Positions 418 through 24,671 of a DNA stretch of 64,000 bases are shown here, piece by piece; the stretch's first letter is position 1; every line of letters begins with the position of its first letter. Location: the sequence record ON529860.1. One strand, 5' to 3'. The notes under the pieces were generated by a model, which saw only the letters and a list, made by a program, of their open reading frames with translations, made no database searches and had not been told where the DNA came from. Both the position numbers and the translations under genes were made by a program.

Positions 418-545
418 CGCGGGTGGTCCCTTGCGGTGGTTTGTTCCCTTATACATAGGGGACAGAAGTTAACAAGAGGTTAAGACGCGAAAGTTTTTTG
501 GGCGGGGCAGGCGGGCGTTAACCTTAACGACGGGTTAATGGATCA

Positions 546-563
546 GCGGCCCCGAAGGGCCGC
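546..563 (-). terminator. GC hairpin with UUCG loop (example of the cassette terminators)
   Basis: GCGGCCC-TTCG-GGGCCGC just after stop at 569. Related hairpins recur near 10850,11720,14130,18620,20370,21900 (CGCCC(C)GGC-TTCG-GCCGG(G)GCG family) and 9355,16383,19227 (CCGGGTTGTCTCCCCCGG family). Confidence 0.7.
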
Positions 564-568
564 CCCTG

Positions 569-988
569 TCAGGCCGCGACCGGCTGGCGCAACAGGGTCC
601 ACAGGCGGTCCATCGCCTTGTTGACGACGTGGGGCGACCCGACGCCGAACGGCGTGACGTTGACCACGTCGGCGGACTTCCAGACATAGGCCCGGATCGT
701 CGCGACGCGGGGTCCGTGCGGCGGCTGTTCGGTGGTGACGAACAGGGTCACGCCCAAGCCGTGGAAGTCGTAGAAGCCGCCGGGGAACTTCGTGCCGAAG
801 CCCTTCATGGCGCCTTTGTCGAACCAATGGCCGCGACGGCGGCGGTCGTAATCGCGCTCGATGTTGGCGAGGCAATTGCTCGATCCCTCGAAGGCCGGGC
901 CTTCGTGCGGCGCGGGGGCGGCGGCGGCCAGCAAGCCCGGCAGGGCGGCGGCGGCGGCGAGGGCGATGCGTTCGGCTTGGGTGGTCAT
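569..988 (-). CDS. hypothetical protein, 139 aa
   Basis: ORF with GGAGA RBS, promoter at 1030, hairpin after stop. Confidence 0.8.
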   Translation of the reverse strand: MTTQAERIALAAAAALPGLLAAAAPAPHEGPAFEGSSNCLANIERDYDRRRRGHWFDKGAMKGFGTKFPGGFYDFHGLGVTLFVTTEQPPHGPRVATIRAYVWKSADVVNVTPFGVGSPHVVNKAMDRLWTLLRQPVAA

Positions 989-1135
989 GGTCGTCTCCGG
1001 TTTGATAGGTCCAACCTACAGGGGAGAAGTTAACAAAGCGTTAACGGCCGTCAAGGCCTTTCTGGCCGCGCGTTAAGGTTAACGGCGGGCGGGCGACAGG
1101 GATGCGCCCCGGCGCGAGGCCGGGGCGATCCTGGG

Positions 1136-1456
1136 TCAGCCGATCAGGCGCGTCTTGAGCGTCGCCCGGCCTTCCGGCGTCAGCTTGGCGCGTTGGGCGC
1201 GGAGGAAGTCAAGCCCCTTTTGATAGGAGTCGATCCTGCCGCCGTATTGGCGCTCCAACCACTTCAACGGCTCCGGGTAATGCGAGGCGTAGAAGGCCAC
1301 GCGACCCGGCCTGATGCGGGGGAACAGCTTGGCGCGGGCCTCTTTGATCGAGGTCGCGCCGGGGACGGGCAGTTCCGCGACCACGCGCCCCTTGCGGAGG
1401 ATATGGGCCGTGTTCAGTTCCGGCGCGTAGGCGTGGCGTTCGAGGATCAGTTTCAT
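1136..1456 (-). CDS. hypothetical protein, 106 aa
   Basis: RBS, promoter at 1499, hairpin after stop. Confidence 0.8.
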   Translation of the reverse strand: MKLILERHAYAPELNTAHILRKGRVVAELPVPGATSIKEARAKLFPRIRPGRVAFYASHYPEPLKWLERQYGGRIDSYQKGLDFLRAQRAKLTPEGRATLKTRLIG

Positions 1457-1509
1457 CGGTCGTCTCCGTTTCGATCCTTAGACCATAGGCGACAGAAGTT
1501 AACAAGAGG

Positions 1510-2151
1510 TTAAGAGGTGAAGTTTTCCAGATAGCGGCGGCGCATCCCCGCAACCGTCGTCGGCGTGACCCGGACAATGTCGGCGTTTTTGCGCATCATG
1601 TCCGCCCGCATGAACGACGTCGTCGCCAATTGCAGGGTGTGATTCACGCAGGAATGATAGCCGTCTTTCAGGCGTTCAATCGGCCACGTCGCCGGATGCA
1701 GCTTGGCGCGTTCCAAGGTCTCCAACGGGATAGGCACGGCGAGGTCGTCGCGATGCTGATCGGACTCCGTCCGCTCATAGGTCGCGCCGCGCGGATAGAC
1801 GCCCAAGATCAAATCCCCGTTGTTCAGCCGGAACCACGTCAGGCCGGAACGCCCGTCGTCGTCAACCGCTTGCGCCAGCACGTAGCGGGCCACGGCGGCG
1901 TCCGCCGGGACGGCCCACGCCACAACCGAATCGAGCATATTGCCGTCTTCGTCATGGGCGAAGATCGCGGACGGGGGGCCAGGTTCCTCCACGACGCCGG
2001 ACGGGTCTAGGCCATAGCGCCCTTCGAGCCAGACGGCGCGGGCCATGGTCAGGCCGTCGCGATAGGCGTCGCGTTCGGCCTCCGTCTCAAAGGGGCCGTG
2101 CAGGACGTTCGCCGGGCAACGCATGTAAAAGCCAACCGCTGAATCGGTCAT
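1510..2151 (-). CDS. hypothetical protein, 213 aa
   Basis: RBS, promoter at 2194; TAA stop lies inside the next CtrA box. Confidence 0.8.
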   Translation of the reverse strand: MTDSAVGFYMRCPANVLHGPFETEAERDAYRDGLTMARAVWLEGRYGLDPSGVVEEPGPPSAIFAHDEDGNMLDSVVAWAVPADAAVARYVLAQAVDDDGRSGLTWFRLNNGDLILGVYPRGATYERTESDQHRDDLAVPIPLETLERAKLHPATWPIERLKDGYHSCVNHTLQLATTSFMRADMMRKNADIVRVTPTTVAGMRRRYLENFTS

Positions 2152-2258
2152 CGGGGTCTCCCTTGATTGAGCCTCCTGTCTAGCACTGATTCGTTAACAA
2201 GAGGTTAACGTCGCGGAACGGACGGGCGTTAACCTTAACGGGCGGTAAGGGTAGAACG

Positions 2259-2489
2259 TCACCGGACAGGCCGGTAACGCTCCACGGGATAAGAGCCCGC
2301 TTTGGTGTAGATGGCGTAGGCGCCGTCGGCGTCGGGACCCAGGCAGGCAAAGGCGCCGCGCGAGGCATTGCGATTGCGCCGGTAGAACAGGGCGAGGAAT
2401 CCTGCGGGCGTTTTGGCTGCGGTCTCTTCAAGGTCCGGCAAGTCGCGGGAGCGACCATCCTCATAGTCGGTGACACTGTAGCGTTTCAA
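2259..2489 (-). CDS. hypothetical protein, about 76 aa (TTG start)
   Basis: GGAGG upstream of TTG, promoter at 2533. Confidence 0.65.
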   Translation of the reverse strand: MKRYSVTDYEDGRSRDLPDLEETAAKTPAGFLALFYRRNRNASRGAFACLGPDADGAYAIYTKAGSYPVERYRPVR

Positions 2490-2597: not shown

Positions 2598-3008
2598 TCA
2601 CAGGCCCCGGCAGGTGGGACCGAACCCGGACTCGATCGACACGGGATCGGTCAGGGGCAGGGCGCAGCGCCCGCAGCGGCCCTCATGATAGACCTTGAGG
2701 GCGGGCGGGATGCGCCCGGCGGCGAGGTGGGGCCACGCCCACGCGAAGGCGCGCGCGGACGGGGCGTCGGCGCCGATGGGGGCGCGGCGGCCATGCCGGA
2801 ACGAATCATCAGCGAAGATCGTGCCGAGGAAGGTGTAGTCGGCTTCGTTGTCCGCGCCGGTCAGGACCGACACGAACCAGACGCTATCCTTGGCGCCCAC
2901 GCGATAGGTGTAGCGGGCGCCGGTGGCCTCGCTGACCAGCGTGACGCGGGCGCGACCGGCGAGCATGAAGCGGCGGACGTTCTCGGCGGACATTTCAGCG
3001 GCGGACAT
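2598..3008 (-). CDS. DUF6011-like protein (C-terminal Cys motif)
   Basis: C-terminus CGRCALPLTDPVSIESGFGPTC resembles the DUF6011 signature. Confidence 0.7.
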   Translation of the reverse strand: MSAAEMSAENVRRFMLAGRARVTLVSEATGARYTYRVGAKDSVWFVSVLTGADNEADYTFLGTIFADDSFRHGRRAPIGADAPSARAFAWAWPHLAAGRIPPALKVYHEGRCGRCALPLTDPVSIESGFGPTCRGL

Positions 3009-3148
3009 GGGGTCGGCTCCGGGCGGGTGATCCTGTCACCCTAGAGCCGATTCGTTAACAAAAGGTTAAAGACAGATCGACGCCGGGACGCGTTAAGGTT
3101 AACGGCGGGCGGGCGCGGGAAGCCGCCCGGCGAACCGGGCGGCGGGGG

Positions 3149-3658
3149 TCACGGGGCCAGAGGATCGGGAGCCGGGATGATCTCGACGTGTCGCCTGCCC
3201 TGCTTGACGCGCCCGACCTTGATTCGCTTCTCGGCGGCGGCGCGCGCCCATTCGGTGCGCGTGGTCTCGGCGGCGTGGCGGCCCGTCTCATCAACGGCGC
3301 TATAGATGGAATAGAGCAGGCCGAACAACGCGACCTCCGGCATGGCCTTGATCGCCTCCAGCATTTCGCCGTTGTCATAGGCCCCGGACACTTCCACGAC
3401 GCGGGTGCCGGCGCCGTGGTGCATCAGGATATAGAAGGTCGATTTGCGGTCGCGGCGGCGCTCGCTTTCGCCGGTGCGGCGGACGGCCAGCTTGACGTCA
3501 TAGGCGCGGTAACAGACGCCGGTCCCCGGCTTGCCGTTGTCGCTTCCCAGGATGCGCATTTCGCGTTCCGGCAGGGGATGACGCAGGACCTCGAAGGGCT
3601 CGAAAGTCGTGTCGTCGGCGTAGCCCGATCCACGGGCGATGATGGCGCTTTTCAGCAT
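3149..3658 (-). CDS. hypothetical protein, 169 aa
   Basis: GGAGA RBS, hairpin after stop. Confidence 0.8.
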   Translation of the reverse strand: MLKSAIIARGSGYADDTTFEPFEVLRHPLPEREMRILGSDNGKPGTGVCYRAYDVKLAVRRTGESERRRDRKSTFYILMHHGAGTRVVEVSGAYDNGEMLEAIKAMPEVALFGLLYSIYSAVDETGRHAAETTRTEWARAAAEKRIKVGRVKQGRRHVEIIPAPDPLAP

Positions 3659-3712: not shown

Positions 3713-4150
3713 TTAACCCGTGATGTCTTCGGTGCGGTCGCGCAGGGCCTCGGCGTAGGTGTCGAAGGGCGCCGATTCGGCCTCTTGTTCTGCGTCATAC
3801 CAATGGAACCGCTTGACCGGGGCGGCGTCTTCCGTCGCGCCGGGGTAGGTGCGCTGAAAGACTTCCAAGTCGTCCAGATCGCCGTCTTCCGGGTCCAGTT
3901 GCAGGTTGAGGGGCGCGGGCGCCTCTGGAACCTTGCCGCTCGAATAGACGTCCACACAGACGCCCATGAAGGTCGCGATTTCGGTCGCCTGCGTCAGAAA
4001 CTGGCGTTGATACGAATCGGGCAGGGCTTGAGCCACGGCCACGGCGAAGGCGTCCGAGGCGAGGCACCAGACCAGTTCCGTAAAGGTCTCGACGCCGTCG
4101 TCCATGTCGGCGTAACCGATGACGGTGTAAAAGGCGGGGCGTTCAGCCAT
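3713..4150 (-). CDS. hypothetical acidic protein, 145 aa
   Basis: RBS, promoter at 4193. Confidence 0.8.
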   Translation of the reverse strand: MAERPAFYTVIGYADMDDGVETFTELVWCLASDAFAVAVAQALPDSYQRQFLTQATEIATFMGVCVDVYSSGKVPEAPAPLNLQLDPEDGDLDDLEVFQRTYPGATEDAAPVKRFHWYDAEQEAESAPFDTYAEALRDRTEDITG

Positions 4151-4340
4151 GGGGCTCTCCTGTTGCGTTGGGGATACCCTAGTCCGCAGAAGTTAACAAT
4201 AGGTTAAGATGCTGAAGATTTCCCGGCGGGCGGGGCGGGCGTTAACCTTAACGCGCCGTTAACCTTAACGGCGGACGGGCAGGGGCGGCCCCGGCCTAGA
4301 GCCGGGGCGCCGGGGCGGCGTCGTTCCGCCCCGTTCCCTG

Positions 4341-4538
4341 TCAGTCTTCGTCCGGGCGATAATCCGGGGCGGGATCGAAGCGACCGCAGAAGGTGCGGCC
4401 CTCCGATTCCATGCCGGGCTCAAAATCCCGGATGACGTAGAGCGCCCGGCCCACGGTGTTGAGGTTGAGCACCGCCACCGGGGCGCCCTTCCGGTTTGCG
4501 GTGCGTTGCGCGTCGCGCTTGACCTGATCGAGGCCCAT
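4341..4538 (-). CDS. hypothetical protein, 65 aa
   Basis: 3 nt after upstream stop; hairpin after stop. Confidence 0.7.
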   Translation of the reverse strand: MGLDQVKRDAQRTANRKGAPVAVLNLNTVGRALYVIRDFEPGMESEGRTFCGRFDPAPDYRPDED

Positions 4539-4541
4539 GGG

Positions 4542-4910
4542 TCAGCCCTCGTAACGGTCGTGAACCGAAACCGGGCCGCCGAAGCGGGGACCGCCGAGGC
4601 GTTCCACGGCTTCGTTGAAACGGCTGTCCGTCGTTCCGGCGTAGTTGCCGCCCGCCATCAGCCAGCGCGTGTCCATCTCGCCGGTGTCCGTCGCCGGGAC
4701 GATCTTGACCGCGCCGGGGACGTTGCCCTTGACCAGATAGGCGGCGGGGCGCGCCGGGTTGGGATCGAACGGGCCATCGACGTTGACCAAGGTCAGTTGC
4801 GCGACCTTGGACGACACGCCGCCGTTGGTGCAATCCACCGAGTCCAGCTTGATGATGTCGCCGGGGTGGTCGGCGGCGGCGCGGCGGTAGATGGAAACGA
4901 TCAGGCCCAT
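4542..4910 (-). CDS. conserved phage hypothetical protein (DCTNGGVS...GGNYAGTTDSRF motif)
   Basis: Motif pattern familiar from phage early-region proteins; AGGAG RBS; promoter at 4955. Confidence 0.75.
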   Translation of the reverse strand: MGLIVSIYRRAAADHPGDIIKLDSVDCTNGGVSSKVAQLTLVNVDGPFDPNPARPAAYLVKGNVPGAVKIVPATDTGEMDTRWLMAGGNYAGTTDSRFNEAVERLGGPRFGGPVSVHDRYEG

Positions 4911-4984
4911 GGGGCTCTCCTTTGTTTTGACCTTCACACCATAGCGCGAAGGTCTTAACAAGAGGTTAACGCCGGAAAGATTTT

Positions 4985-5152
4985 TCAGGCGGCGGAAAAC
5001 AGCGCGGCGGTCGAGACGCCGCCCAGCAGGGCGCGGCGGAACGGGTCGAGCGCGAGCGCCGGGGCGGCCTTGGCCTTGCGGGCGCGCGGCTTGGGGGCGG
5101 CCTTCGCGGCGGCGGGCTTGCGGGCGCGGGTCGTCTTCGGGGCGTCGGTCAT
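4985..5152 (-). CDS. 55-aa Lys/Ala-rich peptide ending in a Tat-signal-like segment
   Basis: Own degenerate promoter at 5209; basic N-part followed by FRRALLGGVSTAALFSAA. Confidence 0.65.
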   Translation of the reverse strand: MTDAPKTTRARKPAAAKAAPKPRARKAKAAPALALDPFRRALLGGVSTAALFSAA

Positions 5153-5310
5153 GGCGGGGCCTTTCAGCAGGGGTTGAAGTCCAGAGCCCCCAGCCTCGCA
5201 CTGATTCCTTACCAAAGGATTAACGGGCCAGGCCGCGCCGGGCGGGCGTTAACCTTAACGGCGCGGGCGGGACCGTTAACCACGGCGGAGGGGTCCGCCG
5301 TGGTCGTGGG

Positions 5311-5649
5311 TCACTTCACCCCGGCGATGATCGAGCAATCGCCGTAAAACTTGCCTTGGAACGGCAGGCAGTCGCCTTGCGGGGTGATGTGGTGCTCAAT
5401 CCAGAACCGGTCGTCGCCCTCGACCTTGGAGCCGTGCGCGTTGCTGTAGCCCTTGGCTTCCCACTCGGCGATGACTTCGGGGAAGGCGGCGCGGAAGGCC
5501 TCGCGCTCCATGGCGAACTTGAGTTCGCTCATGTAGGTGATCTGGATATAGCGGAAGGGGCCGATGGTCGGGCCTTCGAATCCCCAGTCTTCCATGTTTT
5601 GATCGGCGTCATCGCGGCCATGGAACAGGCGCAGGTGAACGTCGGACAT
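5311..5649 (-). CDS. hypothetical protein, 112 aa
   Basis: AGGAG RBS, promoter at 5694. Confidence 0.8.
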   Translation of the reverse strand: MSDVHLRLFHGRDDADQNMEDWGFEGPTIGPFRYIQITYMSELKFAMEREAFRAAFPEVIAEWEAKGYSNAHGSKVEGDDRFWIEHHITPQGDCLPFQGKFYGDCSIIAGVK

Positions 5650-5826
5650 TGGTCGTCTCCTCTTTCGATACAGACCACTATAGAGGCGATTCGTTAACAA
5701 GGGGTTAACGCCGGGACGATTTTTCGGGGGCGCGGGCGGGCGTTAACCTTAACAGCGCGTTAACCTTAACGACCGGTTTACGCCCCCGTTAACCATGGCG
5801 GGGGCGCCGCCATGGTCGGGGTCCGA

Positions 5827-6078
5827 TCAGGCCGCCGGGGGCGGCGGGATCGGGTGGCGCGCGGCGAGGCTCTTGGCGGTCCACGCGTCGGGGGTCGAGA
5901 GGTCGTAGGCCTCGGCGAACAGGCGGGCGCAGTCCTGCACCGTCTCGCCCGTCAGGTGGTCTTCATACCAGCTACGCAGTTGGTCTTCATCGGCCCCGGC
6001 GTCGCGGTAGTCGATGCCGTAGCCCGCCAGCAGGGCGGCGTTGGCGGCGGCGAGCCAGAGTTCAAACGTGGGATACAT
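5827..6078 (-). CDS. hypothetical protein, 83 aa
   Basis: RBS, promoter at 6125. Confidence 0.75.
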   Translation of the reverse strand: MYPTFELWLAAANAALLAGYGIDYRDAGADEDQLRSWYEDHLTGETVQDCARLFAEAYDLSTPDAWTAKSLAARHPIPPPPAA

Positions 6079-6266
6079 CGGGCGTCTCTCCTTGTTCCGA
6101 TGCTTAGACCATATCCGGCAGAAGTTAACAAGAGGTTAAGACCGGAAAGATTTTTCAGGGGTCGTCCGGGGCGGCGTTAACCTTAACAGGCCTTAAGGTT
6201 TTGTTAAGGTTAACGGGCGGGGCCTGGAAATGGTTAACGGCCGTTAACCACTCCCCTTAACCGTCC

Positions 6267-6551
6267 CTAGTTGGGACGGTCGTCGACGAACTCGATTTTC
6301 TGTTCCGTCGTGGCGATCAGGGCCGTGACGTCGGCGATGGCGTCGTCCAGTTTGGCGGCGCCCTTGTAGGTCTTGCCGGTCCAGCCGCCGACCATCGCCA
6401 GCAGGTTCTTGGCGGTGTAGGCCCGGTTGACCTTCATGCCGATCTTGAGGGCGCGCAGGCCTTGGCGAACAACGATCATCTGGTAGCGGGTGATGGCCGC
6501 GCCGGTGTGGGTGACGGCGCCGTGTTCGGAGATGTGGACTAGATCGGTCAT
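6267..6551 (-). CDS. hypothetical protein, 94 aa
   Basis: Promoter at 6596, plausible composition. Confidence 0.75.
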   Translation of the reverse strand: MTDLVHISEHGAVTHTGAAITRYQMIVVRQGLRALKIGMKVNRAYTAKNLLAMVGGWTGKTYKGAAKLDDAIADVTALIATTEQKIEFVDDRPN

Positions 6552-6747
6552 GTCTGTGTTCCCTTGTTGGTGAGATCACTATAGCGACCCAGTTCTTAAC
6601 AACAAGTTAAAATCGAAATAGATCGTGCTTAACGGGAATGGTTAATTTTTCGGGGCTGGGCGTTAACCTTAACAAGAGGTTAACGGCTGTTAAGGTTAAC
6701 GCCGGAGGGTCAGGCGAGACCGCCCCGGCGAACCGGGGCGGCGGGGA

Positions 6748-7371
6748 TCAGCCCAGTTGAATCGTGCCGTCGTCGGCGGTGTAGAGATAGACTTCTTCGG
6801 GGTATTTTTGCGCGGCTTCCGTCAGGGCCTCGCCCTCCGCTTCGGGCCAGTCGCCGTCTTCCCAGAACCCGACGCCGTTACGGGTCCGGGTCATGTAGAA
6901 GTCATATCCGGCCTGCTCTTGCACCGAACAATTGACCGCGCGGACCTCGCCCGACGCATAGGCCGCTTCCAAGGTGGCGGCGTTCTCGCGTTGGAAGCGT
7001 TCGCAGTCCGCGACCATTTCGCGCAAGCCGTCCGGGTGAATCTCTTCCGGGCAAATGGTGTTGTCACGGTCCGAATCGGCGGCGGGGTGTCCGGTCGGAT
7101 ACTCGGCGCCGTTCGAGGCGGCGGCGCCGATGTAGCCCCGCGTGAACGGATCGCACGGCGTCAGGACGGCCCAGGCATCGGCTTCATAGGCGGCGCGCGC
7201 CTTGGCGTTGGCCTCTTCGAGGGCGTCCACAACCGCGCGGGCTTCCGCGACCAGAGCGGCGGGTTCGGTGTGCGGAAATTGCATCACCGTCAGGGCGGCG
7301 ATCTGTTGCGCCGTCAGGGGGCTGTAGTCGGGGACCGTGGTTTCGGCGGTCAGCTTGGCGAGGGTCGTCAT
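6748..7371 (-). CDS. conserved phage hypothetical protein (AGYDFYMTRxRNGVGFW motif)
   Basis: Resembles the common phage motif GHDFWLTRNGHGAGFWD; promoter at 7416. Confidence 0.75.
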   Translation of the reverse strand: MTTLAKLTAETTVPDYSPLTAQQIAALTVMQFPHTEPAALVAEARAVVDALEEANAKARAAYEADAWAVLTPCDPFTRGYIGAAASNGAEYPTGHPAADSDRDNTICPEEIHPDGLREMVADCERFQRENAATLEAAYASGEVRAVNCSVQEQAGYDFYMTRTRNGVGFWEDGDWPEAEGEALTEAAQKYPEEVYLYTADDGTIQLG

Positions 7372-7738
7372 GGGGTTGCTCCCGTTGATGTGCGGGCATA
7401 TTGCACGCCAAGGTCTTAACAACAAGTTAACGCCGCGTAGATTTTTCAGGGCGGGCGGTCGTTAAGGTTAATGCGAAAGACTCGCACAGGGCGGCGTTAA
7501 CCTTAACGGAATCGTCCGAAAAATTAACCATGCCCGTTGACGCTTTCTTAACGACTCGGCGCTAGGCTCAAGGGTTCCATAGCCACGCCTCGCGCCGGGT
7601 CCGACCCCCCGCGCGCGGTGTCACGCGCTCGCCTCATCCGGGGCGGGGCGCCCGGCCACGCGCCCCGACATCAGGAGGCGCGAGCCCGCCCGGCTGGGCG
7701 GTCGATCGGTCATGCCGGCGACCGCCAGGGCGGGGGTG

Positions 7739-7918
7739 CGTCGAATCGAAACGGCGTCAGGTCAAGTCGGCCGGCGTCGAAACGAAACGGCGTCAGGTCA
7801 AGTGCGTGCGCGTCGAATCGAAATGGCGTCAAGTCAAGTTCGCTTGCGTCAAATCGAAATGGCGTCAGGTCAAGTGCGCTTGCATCAAATCGAAACGGCG
7901 TCAGGTCAAGTGCGCGGG
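7739..7918. repeat. 5 x 36-bp tandem repeat (CGTCRAATCGAAAYGGCGTCARGTCAAGT...)
   Basis: Units start at 7739,7775,7811,7847,7883; no spacers. Confidence 0.95.
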
Positions 7919-8007
7919 CGTCAAGTTCGCCTGGGCGGGACGCGCCGACGCCCGGCGGGCGAATGCCGACCGGGCGTCTTTTGATCAGGCGGGAGCCCGA
8001 TGAATTC

Positions 8008-8214: not shown

Positions 8215-8226
8215 GGGGTTTCGGTT

Positions 8227-16410: not shown

Positions 16411-16494
16411 TCAGATCAGCGCCAGCAGGCTGAGCGCGATCAGAAGGTTCATGGCGATGACCGGGCGGACGTGCGTCCTCAGGACGGCGGTCAA
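16411..16494 (-). CDS. small single-TM peptide, 27 aa (MTAVLRTHVRPVIAMNLLIALSLLALI)
   Basis: TTG overlaps upstream TGA; followed by hairpin. Confidence 0.5.
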   Translation of the reverse strand: MTAVLRTHVRPVIAMNLLIALSLLALI

Positions 16495-17344: not shown

Positions 17345-17404
17345 GCGGGGTCTCCTTCCCGGTGGTCGATGGGCTGACCCTACAGGCCAGAGGTTAACAA
17401 GAGG

Positions 17405-17941
17405 TTAATCGGCGAAGATTTCCGACAGGGGCGGGATGATTTTGTAGGGGATCGCCTCGACGCTGGCCTTGTTGAAGGCGCCCAGATAGGTCTTGTAGTA
17501 GCGGGCGCGCTTGCCGTCCGTCATCAGCTTCCACTTGGTCGCGTGACCCGGAATCCACTGCTGATTGTCGGCGGCCTCAATCGCGGCGATGAACTGATCG
17601 ACGGTCATCCCGTCGTGGTCCTGCCGGGTCGGGGAGATGCTGTTCAGTTCGTGCCAGGGGTGGTCGTCGGCGTAGTGGGCGCCGCCGCCGTCGCTGGACC
17701 ATGAGGCCGATTCCATCCCCAGCAGGACGGGCAGGAAGTCGTCGCCGTCGCCGGTCAGCAGGGAACAGACCTTGACCGCCTGCTCCATGGTCATCAGGCC
17801 ATCCAGAATGAACTCCAGATGCTCCTTATAGTTGGAGGCGTCGCGATACATATAGGACAGGCGCGTGTTCTGCCCCGGATGGCCCGCCCAGACGGACGGG
17901 TTGATCTGGTGGGGCAGGGCGGCGGGGGTCAGGTCGGTCAT
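17405..17941 (-). CDS. conserved phage hypothetical protein (YMYRDASNYK motif)
   Basis: Motif familiar from phage proteins; RBS; promoter at 17994; stop inside CtrA box. Confidence 0.8.
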   Translation of the reverse strand: MTDLTPAALPHQINPSVWAGHPGQNTRLSYMYRDASNYKEHLEFILDGLMTMEQAVKVCSLLTGDGDDFLPVLLGMESASWSSDGGGAHYADDHPWHELNSISPTRQDHDGMTVDQFIAAIEAADNQQWIPGHATKWKLMTDGKRARYYKTYLGAFNKASVEAIPYKIIPPLSEIFAD

Positions 17942-18004
17942 GGCGTCTCCTCCATGGGGTGATCTCGATTGAGACCACCCTACAGGCAAGAAGTTAACAA
18001 GAGG

Positions 18005-18487
18005 TTAATCGGCGGCGGAGACTTTGAGGTCCACCCCAAAGACGTGAACCAGTTCGCCGCTCGGCTTGCGCACGATCACGCCCAGCCACTGCTCCTCGAC
18101 AAAATAGCCCGTCACCTCGGCTTCGCCGATGCGATTGACGGCGACGCGCACGGTCGCGCCGACCTGGGGCGGTGAGTCCTCGCCGGACCACAGGACCGCG
18201 CCTTCGATGCCCGGCGGAAGCAGGCGGCCGTCTTTCCAGCGCGCCAGTTCATAGGCGGGCAGGTGCGGACGCCACAGGGGCGCATAGACATCCATCAGCC
18301 ACGACGGGCCGTAGGTGTTGCGGATCGCGCGCAGGAGATTGCCCGCGTCCTCCTGCGTGTCGCCGCCGGTGGCCCACAGGACGGTCAGATGCTCTTTCCA
18401 ACCGCCTTCGACCTTGGCGTATTTGTCGGCGAAGTTCAGCAGGGCGGCGGACGCCTCGGGCGTCAGGGCGGGGTAGGTGTCAGGCAT
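18005..18487 (-). CDS. hypothetical protein, 160 aa
   Basis: RBS, promoter at 18531; stop inside CtrA box. Confidence 0.8.
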   Translation of the reverse strand: MPDTYPALTPEASAALLNFADKYAKVEGGWKEHLTVLWATGGDTQEDAGNLLRAIRNTYGPSWLMDVYAPLWRPHLPAYELARWKDGRLLPPGIEGAVLWSGEDSPPQVGATVRVAVNRIGEAEVTGYFVEEQWLGVIVRKPSGELVHVFGVDLKVSAAD

Positions 18488-18641
18488 GGGGCGTCTCCCT
18501 TGTTCGATGATCCCTTGTAGCGGCGATTCCTTAACAAGAGGTTAACGCCGCGACAAGGGCGTGCGGCGTTAACCTTAACGCGGTGTTTAGGTTAATGCGG
18601 TCAGATCGCAGGAAGGTCCCCGGCCGAAGCCGGGGACGGGA

Positions 18642-19106
18642 TCAGGCGGCGTCCTTGTATTTGGGGAACTTGGCGATCAGGGCGGCGACCGTCTCCTCGA
18701 CCGACTTCATGTTGGGGAAGTAGTGGTCGGCCGGATCGGCGAAGTCCAAAGCGAAGTCGCAGATGAAGGGAATCGCGTCCCACTGCCAGCAGCGGCAGCA
18801 GTCGAACCAGTCCCGCCCGTCTTGATTGTAGGCGGTCCAGACCGCCTCGAAATAGGGGCCGAGGCGCATCATCACGTCGCGCATCTCGGCGGAGCCGTAG
18901 CCGTCGATGGCGTCGTCCCAGCGGGCGAAGGCCGCACGCAGCGGCTTGTCTTTGGTGCGGGCGTTGCGCGGGTCGAGGGCGTGACAGACATACTCCCACG
19001 CCGCCATGGACGCGTGGATCGCGCCGGGCGGATAGCTGGCTCGCATCTTGCAATACTTCTTGGCCGTGGGCGTGGGTTTGAACGTGCTGCGGTGCTTATA
19101 GGGCAT
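18642..19106 (-). CDS. hypothetical protein, 154 aa
   Basis: GGAGG RBS, promoter at 19153. Confidence 0.8.
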   Translation of the reverse strand: MPYKHRSTFKPTPTAKKYCKMRASYPPGAIHASMAAWEYVCHALDPRNARTKDKPLRAAFARWDDAIDGYGSAEMRDVMMRLGPYFEAVWTAYNQDGRDWFDCCRCWQWDAIPFICDFALDFADPADHYFPNMKSVEETVAALIAKFPKYKDAA

Positions 19107-19264
19107 GGGGCGTCTCCTCCCGGTTGATCCTAGCGACCATAGGGCCGAATCGTTAACAATAGGTTAACGCCGCGCGACTTAATTCGCTGTTAAGGTTAAC
19201 GGCCGGCGCTAGGGAAAGGCGCGCCACCGGGGGAGACAACCCGGCGGCGCGACAGGCGGCGGCC

Positions 19265-19825
19265 TCAGACGTCGAAGTCGCCGTATTGCGTCCCGCACTG
19301 GACGATTTCGCCGGTGGCGTCATCCCAGTGGATGCGGTTCAGGCGCAGCTTGTTGCCGGTGCGGGCGTGGGTCCATTCCACCTGACAGGTGATCATGTCG
19401 TCGAAGATCGCCGAGGGCTCGCCGTATTGCGACCAGTCCACGCCGCCCCGGTCGTCAACCTGCTGCTTGGCGTCGGACAGGATGCGGGCCAGCACCTCGG
19501 GCATCAGGCGGCCGGGCGCCTTCTTGAGGCCGTAGGCGCCGCGTCCGTTGTTCGCCATATTGCTGAAGTTGCTGAAGTCCTGCGTGTAGTTCTCGACCTC
19601 GACCGACCCCGGCTGGGGCAGGTCATACATGAGGTCCGACAGCATGTCGCCGACCGTATAGGTCTCGGTGGCGGCGTCCAGCTTGTCGGCCAATTCGGCG
19701 CCCTCGTCGCCCGGCTGGACATAGAGTTCGGCGCCGTCAGCGCGGCGCGCCAGGACGCCGCCCATCGAATCACGCCACGCCTTGAACGCGCCGTCATCGC
19801 TTTCCCAGGTGGGGGCCTTGCTCAT
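19265..19825 (-). CDS. hypothetical protein, 186 aa
   Basis: ATGA coupling, GAGGAGG RBS. Confidence 0.8.
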   Translation of the reverse strand: MSKAPTWESDDGAFKAWRDSMGGVLARRADGAELYVQPGDEGAELADKLDAATETYTVGDMLSDLMYDLPQPGSVEVENYTQDFSNFSNMANNGRGAYGLKKAPGRLMPEVLARILSDAKQQVDDRGGVDWSQYGEPSAIFDDMITCQVEWTHARTGNKLRLNRIHWDDATGEIVQCGTQYGDFDV

Positions 19826-20238
19826 GCCTCGGCCTCCTCTTCGACTTCGGCATAGGCGCTGGGGATGCGCTTGTTCGTGTGGTCGCAGAACAGATCAGGG
19901 TCCTCATAGTTGATCTGGACGCTGTCGAGGCGCCAGCCGGTCGAGGCGTCGTGCAGGTGGTCGTCACAGACCAGCGTGAAGTTCGCCTGCACCGCGTCGA
20001 ACGACAGGGCGACGCCGTCGCGGGTGGCGAAATAGAGCGGATAGCCGCCGAGGTCCGTGTAAGGCCCGGCGCGCAGCGCGGCCTTGACCTGCTGAAGCGC
20101 CTTGACCGGATCGGCGTCGAAGCGGGCGGCCGAACCCTTATAGGCGGCGCGCAGCGGCTTGGCGGTTCCCCAGCCGGGCTGGCGGGTGTCGTAGAGGGCG
20201 CCATCGGACGAGGCGAAAAGGTGGGCGGGCAATGTCAT
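19822..20238 (-). CDS. conserved phage hypothetical protein, 138 aa (GGYPLYF...DLFCDHT motif)
   Basis: RBS, promoter at 20284. Confidence 0.8.
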   Translation of the reverse strand: MTLPAHLFASSDGALYDTRQPGWGTAKPLRAAYKGSAARFDADPVKALQQVKAALRAGPYTDLGGYPLYFATRDGVALSFDAVQANFTLVCDDHLHDASTGWRLDSVQINYEDPDLFCDHTNKRIPSAYAEVEEEAEA

Positions 20239-20401
20239 GGGGTCTCCTCCCGTTGCTGACCCTCCCTGTATCGCATGAAGTTCTTAACAACAAGTTAACG
20301 CCGCGTTTTATTTCCGGCGGCGGGCGTTAACCTTAACGCGCTGTTAAGGTTAACGCGAGCCGGTCGCAGGAAAACGCCCGGCCGAAGCCGGGCGCTTGTG
20401 T

Positions 20402-20812
20402 TCAGCCCTCGCCCGCTTCCCAGAGCGCGACGCCGCAGCCGTAGCCCAGGGCGTAGGCCGCGTAACGGGCCGTGCCGGATTCGTATTTCGGTCGGCCGAA
20501 CCAGTCGTTATGTCGCGCCATGTCTTTAGGCGCGGCATGGGAGGCGTCCCGCCCTTCACCGAAAATCATCGCCAGCAGGTAATAGTCGTCGTCGGGGGTC
20601 GTCGCGCAGGCGGCGACGATCAGGTCGTAGAACTTGCGGGACAGACCTTTCATCAGGGGGAACTCAGGGATCAGCGCGACGGTGGTCGTGCGGTAGCGGG
20701 TGTGACCCTGGTCCCAGCGGTAGGCCTCGGCCGATCCGCTTTCGTAGGGGTTGTCCCACCAGTTGACGCCTGCACGGGCGGCGGCGAGGCCTTCGCGCCA
20801 GATCGGGTCCAT
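20402..20812 (-). CDS. hypothetical protein, 136 aa
   Basis: Coupled ORF, hairpin after stop. Confidence 0.75.
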   Translation of the reverse strand: MDPIWREGLAAARAGVNWWDNPYESGSAEAYRWDQGHTRYRTTTVALIPEFPLMKGLSRKFYDLIVAACATTPDDDYYLLAMIFGEGRDASHAAPKDMARHNDWFGRPKYESGTARYAAYALGYGCGVALWEAGEG

Positions 20813-21057
20813 CAGGCGCCGATCCGGTGGGCCGGGCAGAAGCCCGTCACGACCTTGACGCGACCGCGCTTGAAGCCGGGGCGCAGGGCGCGCGCCGAGC
20901 GTTCGGCGTCGGCGGTCTTCATGTGACCGCAGGCGCAGGACGCGCCGGGGTCGCGGGTCTGGGCCTCGCGCACCTTGTCGGCGCCGGCCTGTGTGCCGAG
21001 CCAGCCGCAGAAGGGCTCGCCGCCGACCGTGATGTGAGCGGGTTGGGTGTTCGTCAT
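20812..21057 (-). CDS. hypothetical Cys-containing protein, 81 aa
   Basis: AGGAGG RBS. Confidence 0.7.
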   Translation of the reverse strand: MTNTQPAHITVGGEPFCGWLGTQAGADKVREAQTRDPGASCACGHMKTADAERSARALRPGFKRGRVKVVTGFCPAHRIGA

Positions 21058-21066
21058 CGGGGCCTC

Positions 21067-21264
21067 CTATAGGTTCAGGGCGGCGTCGAACGCCTGGGAT
21101 TGCAGTTTCTTGGCGGCTTCGGCCTCGGCGGGGTAGAGCCGGGCCAGGCCGTCAAAGCGTTCTTTCTGATGCGAGCGCTCGCCCTCGGCGGCGGTCATAT
21201 GCATGACCTCGCCCCACAGGTGGGCCATTTCGAGGATCAGGACAGAGCGGCGGGAAGCGTTCAT
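21067..21264 (-). CDS. hypothetical protein, 65 aa
   Basis: AAGGAG RBS, promoter at 21306. Confidence 0.7.
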   Translation of the reverse strand: MNASRRSVLILEMAHLWGEVMHMTAAEGERSHQKERFDGLARLYPAEAEAAKKLQSQAFDAALNL

Positions 21265-21316
21265 GGCGGTCTCCTTGTTGACCTCGCCACCCTAGCAGAG
21301 AGGTCTTAACAAGAGG

Positions 21317-21793
21317 TTAACAGCGGCGAAGCATTTCGCGCATCAGGGCTTCCTCGTTGCGGGCGATGTCCAGCGCGGCGCGGTCGTGGCCTTGCTCATG
21401 CGCCTGCTTGGCCTGCTGTCGGCAGATGTCCTGGCGCTTGCGGATGTCGGCCTCCGACAGGGTGCGGAACAGGGCGTCGGCCTCCTGATCGACCTTGACG
21501 GTCCAGTGCTGCTGCGATTCGTCGTCGGCGCGGAGATGGGCGGGGAAGTAGAGGTCCGCCACGTCCTGTGCGAAGAACGACCCGTCGTTGCCGATCTTGA
21601 GCAGTTCGGCCTCGACCTCGACCGGCGCGATCTCTTCGGCGGCGACGACCGTATAGGCGCCGATCCCGTCGCCGTCGGTGATGAAGTGGGCGATGTCCGC
21701 CAGCGTCATGTCCGCGACCAGCCGCTCGGCGGCGGCGGTGTCGGCGGCGTGATACACGACCAGGGAGAGTGTCGTCTTGATGATCTTGGGCAT
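21317..21793 (-). CDS. hypothetical protein, 158 aa
   Basis: AAGGAG RBS, promoter at 21835; stop inside CtrA box. Confidence 0.8.
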   Translation of the reverse strand: MPKIIKTTLSLVVYHAADTAAAERLVADMTLADIAHFITDGDGIGAYTVVAAEEIAPVEVEAELLKIGNDGSFFAQDVADLYFPAHLRADDESQQHWTVKVDQEADALFRTLSEADIRKRQDICRQQAKQAHEQGHDRAALDIARNEEALMREMLRRC

Positions 21794-21927
21794 GGGGTCT
21801 CCTTTGCGACTGATCCTGTTCTAGCAGTGATTCGTTAACAAGAGGTTAACGCGGCGCGCGGTAGTCCGGGGCGTTAACCTTAACAGGGTCAGGCCGGAAA
21901 ACGCCCCGGCCGAAGCCGGGGCGCGGT

Positions 21928-22818
21928 TCAGCCGATCCGCTCCTTCTTGAGGTGGTAGGACCGTCCGTGGGTCATCAGGGTGCGGAACCCGCCCAACCGG
22001 GTCTCGCCCGGCGCTGGGCTGACGACATAGACCGGATCAAGGAAGTCGTCGTTCCAGCGGATCACGTCGTCGAACGACTGGGGCGTATGCAGCACGACCT
22101 TATAGGGTTCGCCCTCGGGCGCGACCAGATCGGTGGTGTGGTCCTCGTCGCCCCTGTAACCGAACACCGACAGGACCGCGACCGGCAGGCCGTCGTCAAG
22201 CGTCGTGAGGTCTTGCAGGGCGCGGGCCTCGGCCAGCCGCTGATGCGGTTCATAGAGGGCGCAGTCGCGCTTGAGCAGATCGGCGCGCAAGGCGACGACG
22301 CGCTGGGGCGTCAGGTCCAGAGCCGCGCAGGCCCCGATGACGACGCCGTAGATGAAGCCGAGTTCGTGCTGCGTGAGTGACACCATGCCGTCCATTCCCG
22401 CCGTCGCGACCTCCTGATTTTTCAGGCCGAACGCCGCCAGGGCGCCGGCGACGTCGCGGCACTCCTGCCGGGTCGGGGCGGTCTTGGACTCGATGTGAAG
22501 GCGCAGGGTTTCGCGGGCCTTCATCAGGTCCACAATCGCCAGCGACAGGCCGGTGTAGCGGCCGTCTTCGACCGGGGCGGGCTTGGGCTTCGGGGCCGGG
22601 TAGGTCTCGACGCACAGCAGGCGGGCGCGGGTTTCCTCGACCGTATAGACCTCGACCTGATAGGTCATGCCAAGCGCCGCGCGTAGTTCGTTGCGGATCG
22701 CCAGACCGGCTTCGGGGTCGGTGGTGGTCAGGCGCAGTTCGCCGATCCGGCGGTCCTCGCCCTTGGCGGGGTGGCGGCGCGACAGTTCAAGGCGCAGGTC
22801 GTAGGGGGCGTCTGTCAT
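21928..22818 (-). CDS. hypothetical protein, 296 aa
   Basis: RBS, promoter at 22861. Confidence 0.8.
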   Translation of the reverse strand: MTDAPYDLRLELSRRHPAKGEDRRIGELRLTTTDPEAGLAIRNELRAALGMTYQVEVYTVEETRARLLCVETYPAPKPKPAPVEDGRYTGLSLAIVDLMKARETLRLHIESKTAPTRQECRDVAGALAAFGLKNQEVATAGMDGMVSLTQHELGFIYGVVIGACAALDLTPQRVVALRADLLKRDCALYEPHQRLAEARALQDLTTLDDGLPVAVLSVFGYRGDEDHTTDLVAPEGEPYKVVLHTPQSFDDVIRWNDDFLDPVYVVSPAPGETRLGGFRTLMTHGRSYHLKKERIG

Positions 22819-22871
22819 CGGTGTCTCCCGTGGTTGAGCGTCTGGTGTAGCCGAGATTCGTTAACAAGAGG

Positions 22872-23063
22872 TTAACGCGGCGTGTTTTTCTCGATCCAGG
22901 TTTCGGCGGCGCGGCGCGTCTGGCGCATGGCGGCGAAGGTGTGGCGCACCTTCCCGTCCGGTCCCGGCGGCGGCACGAACTCGCCCGCGCTGACGATGGC
23001 GTAGTAGGGGCCGTGACCGGAGAAGAAGTCGTAGTATTCGACGACGCGGTGCGGGGGTTCCAT
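22872..23063 (-). CDS. hypothetical protein, 63 aa
   Basis: AAGGAGG RBS; stop inside CtrA box. Confidence 0.7.
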   Translation of the reverse strand: MEPPHRVVEYYDFFSGHGPYYAIVSAGEFVPPPGPDGKVRHTFAAMRQTRRAAETWIEKNTPR

Positions 23064-23098
23064 CGGGCCTCCTTGGCAGGGGTTGTGTCGGGCTGGGC

Positions 23099-23458
23099 TC
23101 AGCTTAGGCGGGCGAGGATTTCGTCGTTCGTCATGGTGTCCATCAGGGCCTGGACCCGCTGGGCCTTTTCATCCTCGACCGCCTGGGCCGCCGTCTTGGC
23201 GCGGCGATGCTCGGCCAGCGCCGCCTTGCCGGCCTCGGTGGTCTCCGGGTCGATGGTCATGTAAAGGCTGACCTCGCGGCCCTGACGGTCCACGAAGGTC
23301 AGGCTTCCAGACGGCCGCACCTTGACGGTGAAGTGATGCTTGACCAGACGCTCGGCGGTCTCCTGACCGAAGTCGCCGCCGAAGCAGCCGCCCGCCGCCT
23401 TGACGGTGTTGTCGCTCTTGAGCCGGGTGTGATAGCCGATGTTCTTATGGGCGTGCAT
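23099..23458 (-). CDS. hypothetical protein, 119 aa
   Basis: AAGGAG RBS before MHAHKNIG. Confidence 0.75.
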   Translation of the reverse strand: MHAHKNIGYHTRLKSDNTVKAAGGCFGGDFGQETAERLVKHHFTVKVRPSGSLTFVDRQGREVSLYMTIDPETTEAGKAALAEHRRAKTAAQAVEDEKAQRVQALMDTMTNDEILARLS

Positions 23459-23468
23459 GGGGCGCTCC

Positions 23469-23807
23469 TTAGAAGGGAATGTCGTCGTCGAACGACGGGG
23501 GCGGGGCGTAGGTCTGGGCGGCGCGCGCGCGGCGGGCGGCGTCCATCTCGGCGCGCTCCTCGTCCGTCGCGCTCCAATACTCGTCGTCTTCCGGGTGGGC
23601 GCCGGGCTCGCCGCGATAGTGCGGGTTCTTGACCCACGCATCCAGCGGATGCAGCAGCCATTCCTGATCCGGGACCTCGCGGCCTTCCGTGTGCGCGAAG
23701 CCCGACACGGCCAGGCTCATGTATTCGCCCTGGCTCAGCGACTCCATCGCCAGAGCGTCTTCCTTTTCGCGGCGGGCCTCTTCGGCCATTTCGATCACAT
23801 CGCGCAT
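23469..23807 (-). CDS. hypothetical acidic protein, 112 aa
   Basis: AAGGAG RBS, promoter at 23849. Confidence 0.75.
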   Translation of the reverse strand: MRDVIEMAEEARREKEDALAMESLSQGEYMSLAVSGFAHTEGREVPDQEWLLHPLDAWVKNPHYRGEPGAHPEDDEYWSATDEERAEMDAARRARAAQTYAPPPSFDDDIPF

Positions 23808-23983
23808 CGGCGTCTCTCCTTGTGAGCCCCCTTTATGCCAGACAGAAGTTAACAACAAGTTAACGCCGACGCTTTTCTGCATTTTCTTCGGGCGGCGGCT
23901 GCGGGCGTTAACCTTAACGGCGTGTTAAGGTTAACGGTCGGGGTCCAGCCTGGGAAACGGCGTCCCGGAACGGGACGCCTCTC

Positions 23984-24052
23984 CTAGAAGGTGAGCAGGA
24001 TGACCAGCAGGGCCAGAAAGAGGCGGGAGGCGCCGGCCAGCTTGTCGATCAA
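23984..24052 (-). CDS. small single-TM peptide, 22 aa (MIDKLAGASRLFLALLVILLTF)
   Basis: TTG overlaps upstream TGA; hairpin follows. Confidence 0.5.
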   Translation of the reverse strand: MIDKLAGASRLFLALLVILLTF

Positions 24053-24519
24053 GTCGCGTTGTCCGCCTTCATCGCCGCGCACAGGGTCTCGACCAGCCGC
24101 TTGTGGCGCGCCAGAGCGGCGGGGTCCGTGCGGTCGCCTTGGAAGGGGACCAGCACCAGAGGTGTGGCCGAGGGGTCCAGCGCCCAGAAGATTTCCGTCT
24201 CGCCGTCCGTCATCTGGTAGGTGAAGACGTTCAGGTCGGCTGGGGCGTGGTCGAGGAAATAGACGCGTCCGTTGAACCGGGCGTTGAAGGGCTGTTCCGG
24301 CGTCGCCAAGTCGATCTCAGCCAGCACGGCGTCGCGCACGGCGTCAATCGGGTGGACGCCGTCTTCGCTGGTTTCATCAGGACGGGATTCGGCCTCGGCC
24401 TCCGCGTCGCGCTTGATGTCCTCGACCACGGCGGCGCGCGCCTCCTCCCAAGTCGCGCTGGCGCTGGGCTCCTCGTCGGGCATGAAGCCCGAGACGTTCG
24501 ATCCGGTCACATAAGGCAT
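24049..24519 (-). CDS. hypothetical protein, 156 aa
   Basis: RBS, promoter at 24567. Confidence 0.75.
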   Translation of the reverse strand: MPYVTGSNVSGFMPDEEPSASATWEEARAAVVEDIKRDAEAEAESRPDETSEDGVHPIDAVRDAVLAEIDLATPEQPFNARFNGRVYFLDHAPADLNVFTYQMTDGETEIFWALDPSATPLVLVPFQGDRTDPAALARHKRLVETLCAAMKADNAT

Positions 24520-24671
24520 CGGGGTCTCCCTTGTTGATGCGAGGCTGCAATCTACCCGACGAGGTCTTAACAAAAAGTTAACAGCGACGCAATCGCTTTT
24601 CTTCGCGGCGTTAACCTCTTGTTAACTTCTTCGTGGGATAAGGGACAGGTCAACAACACAGGAGATCGCCG

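Follow-up and report, generated by a model that had tools for sequence, protein, structure and literature searches.

The DNA examined here, a window of 64,000 nucleotides identical to bases 62001–126000 of record ON529860.1, belongs to the Brevundimonas phage vB_BpoS-Papperlapapp (hereafter Papperlapapp) and carries two-thirds, on the terminase side, of a roughly 35-kb module of 69 small genes that is bounded by the genes for the portal and the large terminase. Through this module runs a series of near-identical promoters, here called class A, each built on a box of the form TTAA-N5-TGTTAA. We consider it likely that these promoters are activated by the host cell-cycle regulator CtrA, with the box in place of a –35 element, and that they tie the module to the host cell cycle gene by gene. 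The same wiring had been proposed in an original prediction made from the letters of the window, and all the computational tests run agree with it. The support comes from the predicted position of the box at –38/–39, as in host promoters, from published experiments on the related phage phiCbK, from 43 orthologous promoters of phage Marchewka in which the core of the box is invariant, from the lack of a phage-encoded CtrA, and from the exchange of the promoter type in phage Gurke. CtrA sites in alphaproteobacterial phages, which the prediction mentioned, are indeed on record for this very subfamily (Mascolo et al., 2022; PMC9437464), of which Papperlapapp is a new and unusually large example. 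What is new here is the geometry of the promoters, the number of perfect sites, a second conserved element (class B), a subclass with a fixed GANTC, and a sister phage that relies on sigma-70 promoters in the same host; of these, the 2022 study (PMC9437464) describes neither the promoter geometry nor class B nor the contrast with Gurke.

The genome of Papperlapapp comprises 356,874 bp and was deposited as a circular record under the Dolichocephalovirinae, the phiCbK-like subfamily. Its terminase region shares 73–79% nucleotide identity with phiCbK-like phages, which places it in the phiCbK lineage. The describing paper presents it as a giant siphophage whose head is very long and which was isolated on B. 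pondensis LVF1, and about 84% of its proteins have no known function; CtrA, promoters and terminal repeats are not mentioned there. Positions below are those of the window unless the record is named. The window part of the module and the landmark that follows it are:

118–24917, minus strand: 45 annotated small genes, all "hypothetical"
27076–29799, minus strand: large terminase gene

Upstream of the window the module extends to record position 51.5 kb. Among 43 module proteins scanned for families, the matches were to eleven PHROGs, most of them unnamed, and to two domains of unknown function.

The window contains 48 copies of TTAA-N7-TTAA, from 469 to 26780, and not one between 27 and 64 kb, as had been claimed; dinucleotide shuffles of the window, used as background, give 0. 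A fuller consensus, TTAACNTNTTGTTAA, has 44 matches with up to two mismatches against 0.05 expected. The predicted count of 33 perfect copies and one degenerate copy was reproduced: 32 of the perfect class A boxes lie on the minus strand and one, at 24611, on the plus strand, while the degenerate copy, TTAATCCTTTGGTAAG, is at 5208–5223. The other TTAA-N7-TTAA boxes of the window arise from tandem or neighbouring copies of class B, the element GTTAAGGTTAAC or its complement GTTAACCTTAAC. In the 50 kb upstream of the window there are 19 more boxes, 18 of them class A (record 51829–61593), so the extent first given for the array (469–24625) holds an array but cuts it short. The whole module has 51 class A promoters, and 49 of its 69 genes have one of their own. 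Across the genome, 67 of 68 boxes fall within 37 kb (record 51.8–88.8 kb), about a tenth of the 357 kb, a strongly skewed position along the genome like that of the phiCbK-like phages with CtrA-site-dense end regions (Mascolo et al., 2022). The statement that almost every gene of the window region is driven in this way proved somewhat generous, since 33 of the 45 annotated genes have their own box and the remainder stand second or third in short operons; that TTGACA-type promoters serve the interval from 27 to 64 kb is weakly supported, with just four TTGACA-N15-19-TAnnnn sites there. An exact 16-mer search in IMG/VR gave nine single matches, two of them within one phiCbK-like contig, and was uninformative. 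The class A promoters of the window are listed below with their strand, their box and the gene or genes behind them; "GANTC" marks copies with this sequence directly after the box.

452–483, minus: class A, box 469–483 (TTAACCTCTTGTTAAC), –10 TATGTA; gene 118–417
1013–1044, minus: class A, box 1030–1044, –10 TAGGTT; gene 569–988
1482–1513, minus: class A, box 1499–1513, –10 TATGGT; gene 1136–1456; the stop of gene 1510–2151 lies in the 5′ TTAA
2177–2208, minus: class A with GANTC (CGAATC), box 2194–2208; gene 1510–2151
2516–2547, minus: class A with GANTC, box 2533–2547; gene 2259–2489
3038–3069, minus: class A with GANTC, box 3055–3069; gene 2598–3008
4176–4207, minus: class A, box 4193–4207; genes 3713–4150 and 3149–3658
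4938–4969, minus: class A, box 4955–4969; genes 4542–4910 and 4341–4538
5191–5223, minus: degenerate class A, box 5208–5223, then GAATC; upstream of gene 4985–5152
5677–5708, minus: class A with GANTC, box 5694–5708; gene 5311–5649
6108–6139, minus: class A, box 6125–6139; gene 5827–6078
6579–6610, minus: class A, box 6596–6610; gene 6267–6551
6662–6700, minus: class A-type box 6669–6683 fused to class B copies at 6662 and 6689; no gene directly behind
7399–7430, minus: class A, box 7416–7430, TA shifted by 2 nt; gene 6748–7371
9246–9277, minus: class A, box 9263–9277; gene 8227–9210
9909–9940, minus: class A, box 9926–9940; gene 9397–9876
10747–10778, minus: class A, box 10764–10778; gene 9946–10719
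11640–11671, minus: class A with GANTC, box 11657–11671; gene 10865–11611
12098–12129, minus: class A, box 12115–12129; gene 11750–12070; the stop of gene 12126–12545 lies in the box
13172–13203, minus: class A with GANTC, box 13189–13203; genes 12542–13147 and 12126–12545
14017–14048, minus: class A, box 14034–14048; gene 13289–13981
14899–14930, minus: class A, box 14916–14930; gene 14155–14865; the stop of gene 14927–15034 lies in the box
15532–15563, minus: class A, box 15549–15563; genes 15034–15498 and 14927–15034
16294–16325, minus: class A with GANTC, box 16311–16325; gene 15658–16269
17377–17408, minus: class A, box 17394–17408; genes 16970–17344 and 16491–16802; the stop of gene 17405–17941 lies in the box
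17977–18008, minus: class A, box 17994–18008; gene 17405–17941; the stop of gene 18005–18487 lies in the box
18514–18545, minus: class A with GANTC (GGAATC), box 18531–18545; gene 18005–18487
19136–19167, minus: class A with GANTC (CGATTC), box 19153–19167; gene 18642–19106
20267–20298, minus: class A, box 20284–20298; genes 19822–20238 and 19265–19825
21289–21320, minus: class A, box 21306–21320; genes 21067–21264, 20812–21057 and 20402–20812; the stop of gene 21317–21793 lies in the box
21818–21849, minus: class A with GANTC, box 21835–21849; gene 21317–21793
22844–22875, minus: class A with GANTC, box 22861–22875; gene 21928–22818; the stop of gene 22872–23063 lies in the box
23832–23863, minus: class A, box 23849–23863; genes 23469–23807, 23099–23458 and 22872–23063
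24550–24581, minus: class A, box 24567–24581; gene 24049–24519; left arm of a back-to-back divergent pair
24611–24642, plus: class A, box 24611–24625; gene 24672–24917; the only plus-strand copy in the window

The anatomy of the promoter was read from an alignment, on the coding strand, of the 51 class A copies of the window and the upstream part of the module. The consensus of the box is TTAAC-(C/T)-T-n-T-T-G-TTAA-(C/G), in which neither of the TTAA half-sites nor the TTG ahead of the second varies among the 51 copies, as expected of a full CtrA motif. An A-rich stretch lies about 8–16 nt 5′ of the box; after the final C/G come a 10-nt spacer that includes one nearly invariant T, a –10 of the form TAnnnT, a leader of about 25 nt, a Shine-Dalgarno (SD) sequence and the ATG. 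Conservation beyond the box is highest at T of offset 19 (98%), followed by A27 (88%), T26 (71%) and T31 (49%). A TA exactly 11 nt after the box, as originally described, is present in 25 of 33 promoters of the window and in 36 of 51 overall, the others having it at 12–13 nt. The SD behind the –10 was confirmed: SD and ATG follow the box, with 41–52 nt from the end of the box to the annotated start codon in the window, and module-wide an ATG is found 41–74 nt past the box in 49 of 51 copies, which places the sites in front of genes. Every class A copy with an annotated gene behind it (49/51) is oriented towards that gene. No –35-like hexamer was found 16–18 nt 5′ of the –10 in the 51 aligned copies, and the TTG of the box was rejected as a –35 element because just 12 nt separate it from the –10. 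If the –10 occupies offsets 26–31, transcription is predicted to start at offset 38–39, which would put the box at about –39 to –24 and its 5′ end at –38/–39.

In nine cassettes the box and the coding sequence are interlocked: the TAA within the first half-site of the next box doubles as the stop codon of the upstream gene. In the window these overlaps lie at

1510–1513, 12126–12129, 14927–14930, 17405–17408, 18005–18008, 21317–21320 and 22872–22875,

and two more lie upstream of it. The same overlap of stop and box is seen in phage Bajun, with the first half-site weakened to GTAA.

The role of the box can be read from phage Gurke, which infects the same host strain (B. pondensis LVF1) and in which the same module of single-gene cassettes runs from portal to terminase (ON529850.1, region 271001–321000, with the cassettes at 6–42 kb of that region). 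Homologues of 35 of the 69 Papperlapapp module proteins are found there, mostly in the same order; the Gurke cassettes are preceded by 47 promoters of the form AAAAAG-n-GG-TTGACA-N17-TAGAAG and contain a single class A-like box. Both phages keep the same distance between –10 and ATG (31–35 nt in Gurke, 30–36 nt in Papperlapapp), and when the promoters are aligned at the –10, the TTGACA of Gurke falls within the spacer of the Papperlapapp box. For this reason the box appears to stand in the place of the –35 element in Papperlapapp, and what remains of the promoter looks readable by the host sigma-70 polymerase.

The original prediction held that TTAA-N7-TTAA over the –35 region is the architecture of CtrA-activated Caulobacter promoters, and the mapped promoters of Caulobacter bear it out. 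Among 52 mapped, cell-cycle-regulated full-motif CtrA promoters of Caulobacter, 35 place the motif with its 5′ base between –38 and –40, including ctrA P2 (–39), fliQ, ccrM, divK and ftsQ (Zhou et al., 2015, dataset S5; PMC4287350). A TG before the second half-site is common among these host sites, and three distinct sites with two perfect TTAA half-sites occur among the 52 promoters (PMC4287350). The phage promoters thus resemble idealised copies of the host full-motif class, since they share the predicted position and the TG feature and have the perfect half-sites that are rare in the host. The two sets have in common TTAA-N7-TTAA over the –35 region and one site per promoter; however, the Caulobacter sites are mostly imperfect whereas the class A copies are perfect, and many Caulobacter promoters have SciP motifs at –60 to –90 and mapped starts, while the phage promoters are without SciP motifs and have predicted starts. 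CtrA itself is well conserved in the genus of the host: in Brevundimonas genomes other than B. pondensis LVF1 it is 84–90% identical to Caulobacter CtrA with an almost unchanged DNA-binding domain, and the protein of B. poindexterae (88% identity) is identical over residues 146–202. The ctrA promoters of Brevundimonas have a TTAA-N6-TTAA site and a GANTC-bearing P1, which did not sharpen the comparison.

Experimental evidence for promoters of the same design comes from phiCbK. We found three perfect boxes in its 10.3-kb terminal repeat, ahead of gp005, gp018 and gp020, and a degenerate one ahead of gp004; all four have the same spacing as class A to a –10 of CTAGGGT, CTATGGT or CCAGGGT. Phosphorylated CtrA (CtrA-P) shifts probes of gp005 and gp018, an effect that is lost once the site is mutated; in a temperature-sensitive ctrA host (ctrA(ts)), promoter activity falls 29-fold for gp005 and 5-fold for gp018 (Mascolo et al., 2022; PMC9437464). 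Since these assays used uninfected cells, no phage factor was present. CtrA sites of phiCbK-like phages concentrate in the terminal repeats, which led to the proposal of "lytic deferment" (PMC9437464), and larger Caulobacter relatives have 20–62 sites predicted with a looser matrix, the repeat of CcrSC measuring 23.9 kb (PMC9437464, supplement). The Papperlapapp module is probably the counterpart of the phiCbK repeat region, because it starts just after the large terminase gene, as the phiCbK repeat does, because three of its proteins match genes of that repeat, and because the non-coding zone between module and terminase shows short repeats of the kinds that also mark the beginning of the phiCbK repeat. 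In phiCbK the repeat begins inside the large terminase gene's end and in Colossus just past that gene; synteny in a circular record suggests that the module region may likewise be a terminal repeat. Papperlapapp and phiCbK thus share the subfamily, the position after the terminase, the box, its spacing to the –10 and genes of unknown function behind it, and, as in the "low positional entropy" phages, the sites are concentrated in one region, ahead of genes. They differ in host (Brevundimonas instead of Caulobacter) and in scale, with 51 promoters and 68 perfect boxes over 37 kb in Papperlapapp against three perfect boxes in the phiCbK repeat.

Comparison with Marchewka, which is about 90% identical to Papperlapapp and whose homologous region holds 56 class A promoters and a total of 70 boxes, indicates what has been kept. 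In 43 pairs of orthologous promoters there are no changes at either TTAA or at the TTG, and 0–1 at the TA of the –10. The 16-nt box diverges by 2.6%, compared with 11.5% for the 40 nt upstream of it and 13% for the spacer. Such invariance of the half-sites beside diverging flanks points to purifying selection. A weaker variant, GTAA-N7-TTAAG, is found in the B. goettingensis phage Bajun. As phiCbK, Bajun and the Papperlapapp group all carry boxes of this kind, the CtrA-type box seems to be the older state, which the Gurke lineage would have left.

The mechanism we propose is that a dimer of phosphorylated host CtrA would bind the two direct TTAA half-sites, one helical turn apart, and recruit sigma-70 RNA polymerase, as it does at Caulobacter full-motif promoters and as PhoB does at pho boxes. 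In E. coli, PhoB is a winged-helix response regulator whose dimer sits on 11-bp direct repeats that replace the –35 element and end about 10 bp 5′ of the –10; the analogy concerns the mechanism only, for regulator, signal and sequence differ. Each cassette would be transcribed only while active CtrA is available, and module expression would therefore follow the host cell cycle, in line with the lytic deferment of Mascolo et al. (2022). The start site, the binding of CtrA in Brevundimonas and the timing are what we infer from these comparisons, and the "early" timing of the module is an assumption. As to whether the module fires or waits in a piliated swarmer cell, deferral is the more likely outcome, because Caulobacter full-motif CtrA promoters are nearly silent in swarmers and peak in predivisional cells: their activity is about zero at 0–40 min (swarmer to early stalked) and highest at 80–120 min (predivisional) (PMC4287350). 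Host regulators are known to time phages in other systems, such as Spo0A for phi29 and LexA for some temperate phages (PMC9437464); there, however, a few repressing sites act at key promoters, whereas Papperlapapp has about fifty predicted activating sites, one per gene.

Three observations speak against CtrA control in this form. The –10 is weak, and in about one copy out of four it is displaced by 1–2 nt. The box spacer, CyTnTTG, is kept more than known CtrA binding requires, and therefore a second reader may exist, or recombination may keep the copies alike. Finally, the SciP motif GCGNC-N5-GNCGC is present at –60 to –90 in none of the 51 promoters, and the half motif GCGAC in 4 of 51 against 10 of 51 in a control zone; with SciP motifs not enriched, the Caulobacter timing rules may not transfer to these promoters.

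The box could instead be read by a factor encoded by the phage or delivered with the virion, the likeness to CtrA sites being mimicry or coincidence. The T at offset 19, like the box spacer, is conserved beyond known CtrA needs, about 84% of the phage proteins are without known function, and candidates exist. The gene at 54135–55100 (plus strand), annotated as "RNA polymerase", does not encode a polymerase; its product is a 321-aa multi-helix-turn-helix (HTH) protein with about five tandem HTH or sigma-70 region-4-like domains and no solved relative by sequence, which makes it a candidate phage DNA-binding factor, and the phage encodes other HTH proteins and a GcrA homologue; a sigma-like factor could also have escaped recognition. 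Yet the half-sites are direct repeats 11 bp apart at the predicted –39, as in host CtrA promoters. A tblastn search of the whole Papperlapapp genome with Caulobacter CtrA (query 97–98% identical to Caulobacter genomes) found no CtrA homologue, with a best E of 3.8, and no CtrA/OmpR-type regulator. Since the phiCbK promoters of the same architecture work, CtrA-dependently, in uninfected Caulobacter, since no CtrA-like protein is encoded, and since Gurke runs the same cassettes off plain sigma-70 promoters that the host polymerase reads without a phage factor, we regard a phage-encoded reader as very unlikely, while the multi-HTH protein or the GcrA homologue may add a layer of control. The "histidine kinase" and "MotA" annotations of the phage have no Pfam support.

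The uniformity of the promoters could instead reflect copying more than selection by CtrA, if promoter and class B units were primarily recombination sites that shuffle cassettes. In favour of this, 69 genes without paralogues have near-identical promoters; duplication was rejected as the source of the copies because the module genes have practically no paralogues (one weak pair among the 69 proteins). Between Papperlapapp and Marchewka, whole spacers have been swapped as blocks between orthologous promoters, and of about 12 insertion/deletion breakpoints in the module roughly half (five to six of them clear) coincide with promoter or class B repeats, in one pairwise comparison without statistical control. 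Examples, several with overlapping alignments, are at 2244/2520, 11599–11745, 17357–17415 and 22880, and the cassette of gene 2259–2489, missing from Marchewka, is an insertion/deletion bounded by the repeats at 2194 and 2533. Such gains and losses of repeat-ended cassettes are what recombination between repeats would produce. They recall the promoter-early stem-loop (PeSL) cassettes of T4-type phages, reportedly described by Arbiol et al. in 2010, in which small unrelated early-region genes each have a near-identical promoter and a structured element and are gained or lost at repeats; in those cassettes, however, the promoters are plain early sigma-70 promoters, whereas in Papperlapapp dependence on a host response regulator is predicted, and there is no sequence relationship. 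Recombination would explain the spread and the likeness of the units but neither the perfect CtrA site at –39 nor the invariant half-sites amid drift; it is compatible with CtrA activation and complementary to it instead of a true alternative, and as the primary explanation we give it a small chance. Least probable of all is that CtrA acts here as a repressor, or that the array serves as a sink drawing CtrA-P away from host promoters and origin. It is true that the phage has 68 perfect boxes against the three distinct perfect ones of the 52 Caulobacter promoters, and that class B arrays at 24960–25300 drive no gene. But the promoters have no –35 of their own and in the absence of an activator would be inactive, host sites activate from –39 whereas repressing ones lie near –10, and the phiCbK homologues are activated and not repressed. 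Repression is thus unlikely because no promoter remains without the box; a sink effect could exist alongside activation.

Beyond activation by CtrA itself, the contrast between about 50 perfect CtrA boxes in Papperlapapp and Marchewka and about 47 consensus sigma-70 promoters in Gurke, which shares the LVF1 host with Papperlapapp, raises the thought that CtrA control of the module is an optional, swappable setting; we hold this to be rather doubtful. If it were true, the Papperlapapp/Gurke pair would be a promoter swap made by nature that bears on lytic deferment, itself an unproven hypothesis, and the effect of CtrA wiring on latent period, burst and cell-stage dependence could be tested directly. 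Phages that enter through pilus or flagellum can infect just one stage of a dimorphic host, which raises the question of how they time themselves to its cell cycle; the published proposal rests on few promoters in phiCbK and two other phages, and Papperlapapp, with about fifty single-gene units and perfect CtrA sites placed as in host promoters, is the most extreme case so far. The array, on replicating phage DNA, might also sink CtrA-P and so disturb the host cell cycle. For the poorly annotated group of phiCbK-like phages, class A provides a promoter model for annotation, and alongside it the second conserved element, GTTAAGGTTAAC, is flagged.

This class B element is a 12-mer co-distributed with class A. 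Of the 51 class A boxes, 28 have it 18–83 nt to their 5′ side, facing either way, and its copies in the window are as follows:

517–26800, both orientations: 33 copies of class B (GTTAAGGTTAAC or its complement GTTAACCTTAAC)
first part of the starts: 517, 1072, 2228, 2566, 3092, 4241, 4258, 5248, 5742, 5759, 6176, 6203, 6662, 6689, 7496, 9316, 11694
second part of the starts: 13232, 14098, 15594, 16345, 18568, 19189, 20326, 20343, 21873, 23907, 23924, 24972, 25167, 25184, 25248, 26789
24960–25300, no strand: array of class B and half-sites of the TTAACCAT type at the end of the module nearest the terminase, driving no gene

In Papperlapapp, 45 of 46 copies lie within record 53.0–88.8 kb and the 46th at record 95.0 kb; this lone element outside the module (33041–33052) sits at a gene junction in the terminase-side operon. 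Class B is also found in Marchewka (46 copies), Gurke (41) and the phiCbK repeat (2). Read in one orientation it is TTAACCTT, close to the half-site motif TTAACCAT, and its half-sites are 6 bp apart, which is not the geometry of CtrA. A literature search on GTTAAGGTTAAC returned nothing relevant. In Gurke, many promoters have a TTAACC(A/C)T half-site 26–35 nt upstream, and 39 have a class B element.

GANTC, the target of the host methylase CcrM, occurs at exactly offset 16, between box and –10, in 14 of the 51 class A promoters, and at any other offset in one at most. These 14 thus carry it between the –35 and –10 positions, as GcrA/CcrM-type promoters do, and 10 of 12 fixed sites are retained in Marchewka. 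Ten of the 51 promoters fit the extended form YGAKTCK, which Haakonsen is said to have given in 2015 as the extended GcrA/CcrM site. In Caulobacter, GANTC between –35 and –10 defines a distinct temporal class (Zhou et al., 2015; PMC4287350). The phage encodes a homologue of GcrA, the cell-cycle regulator (record 202739–203287; PF07750, E = 9e-11), which together with the fixed GANTC of the 14 promoters would, if the reading of these sites is true, add a methylation-dependent second tier. Its methylases comprise an MT-A70 adenine methylase and a C5 cytosine methylase, and no CcrM-type methylase was recognised among the phage proteins.

A simple terminator scan gave no excess (19 against 16.4 expected), the intergenic GC-rich hairpins with short T tails being below threshold. 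Three composite repeat zones in the same orientation, at 25331–26708, 7761–9071 and record 56980–58241, are each made of GTCAAATC iterons, AGTCACG repeats and GGGTCCC repeats. The first has 12 GTCAAATC iterons with a period of 16 nt, 7 AGTCACG and 9 GGGTCCC repeats (period about 25 nt), and the second 4 GTCAAAT iterons, 3 AGTCACG and 5 GGGTCCC repeats. All three are also present in Marchewka and Gurke, and one stands where the phiCbK terminal repeat begins; they are possible origin, packaging or partition sites. The annotated "hypothetical protein" gene 25266–26189 (plus strand) lies wholly on iterons and AGTCACG repeats, has no family match and is probably not a gene.

Plus-strand class A boxes at record 55301 and 56253 face no annotated gene; each is paired back to back, at a distance of 45 nt, with a promoter on the minus strand, as in the 24567/24611 pair, and there may be unannotated small genes or RNAs behind them. 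The sole box outside the module, at record position ~247640, consists of TTAACCAT followed by TTAA-N7-TTAA and a class B element, and ends about 25 nt ahead of the start codon of a flotillin-like gene, a position that would suggest repression and not activation.

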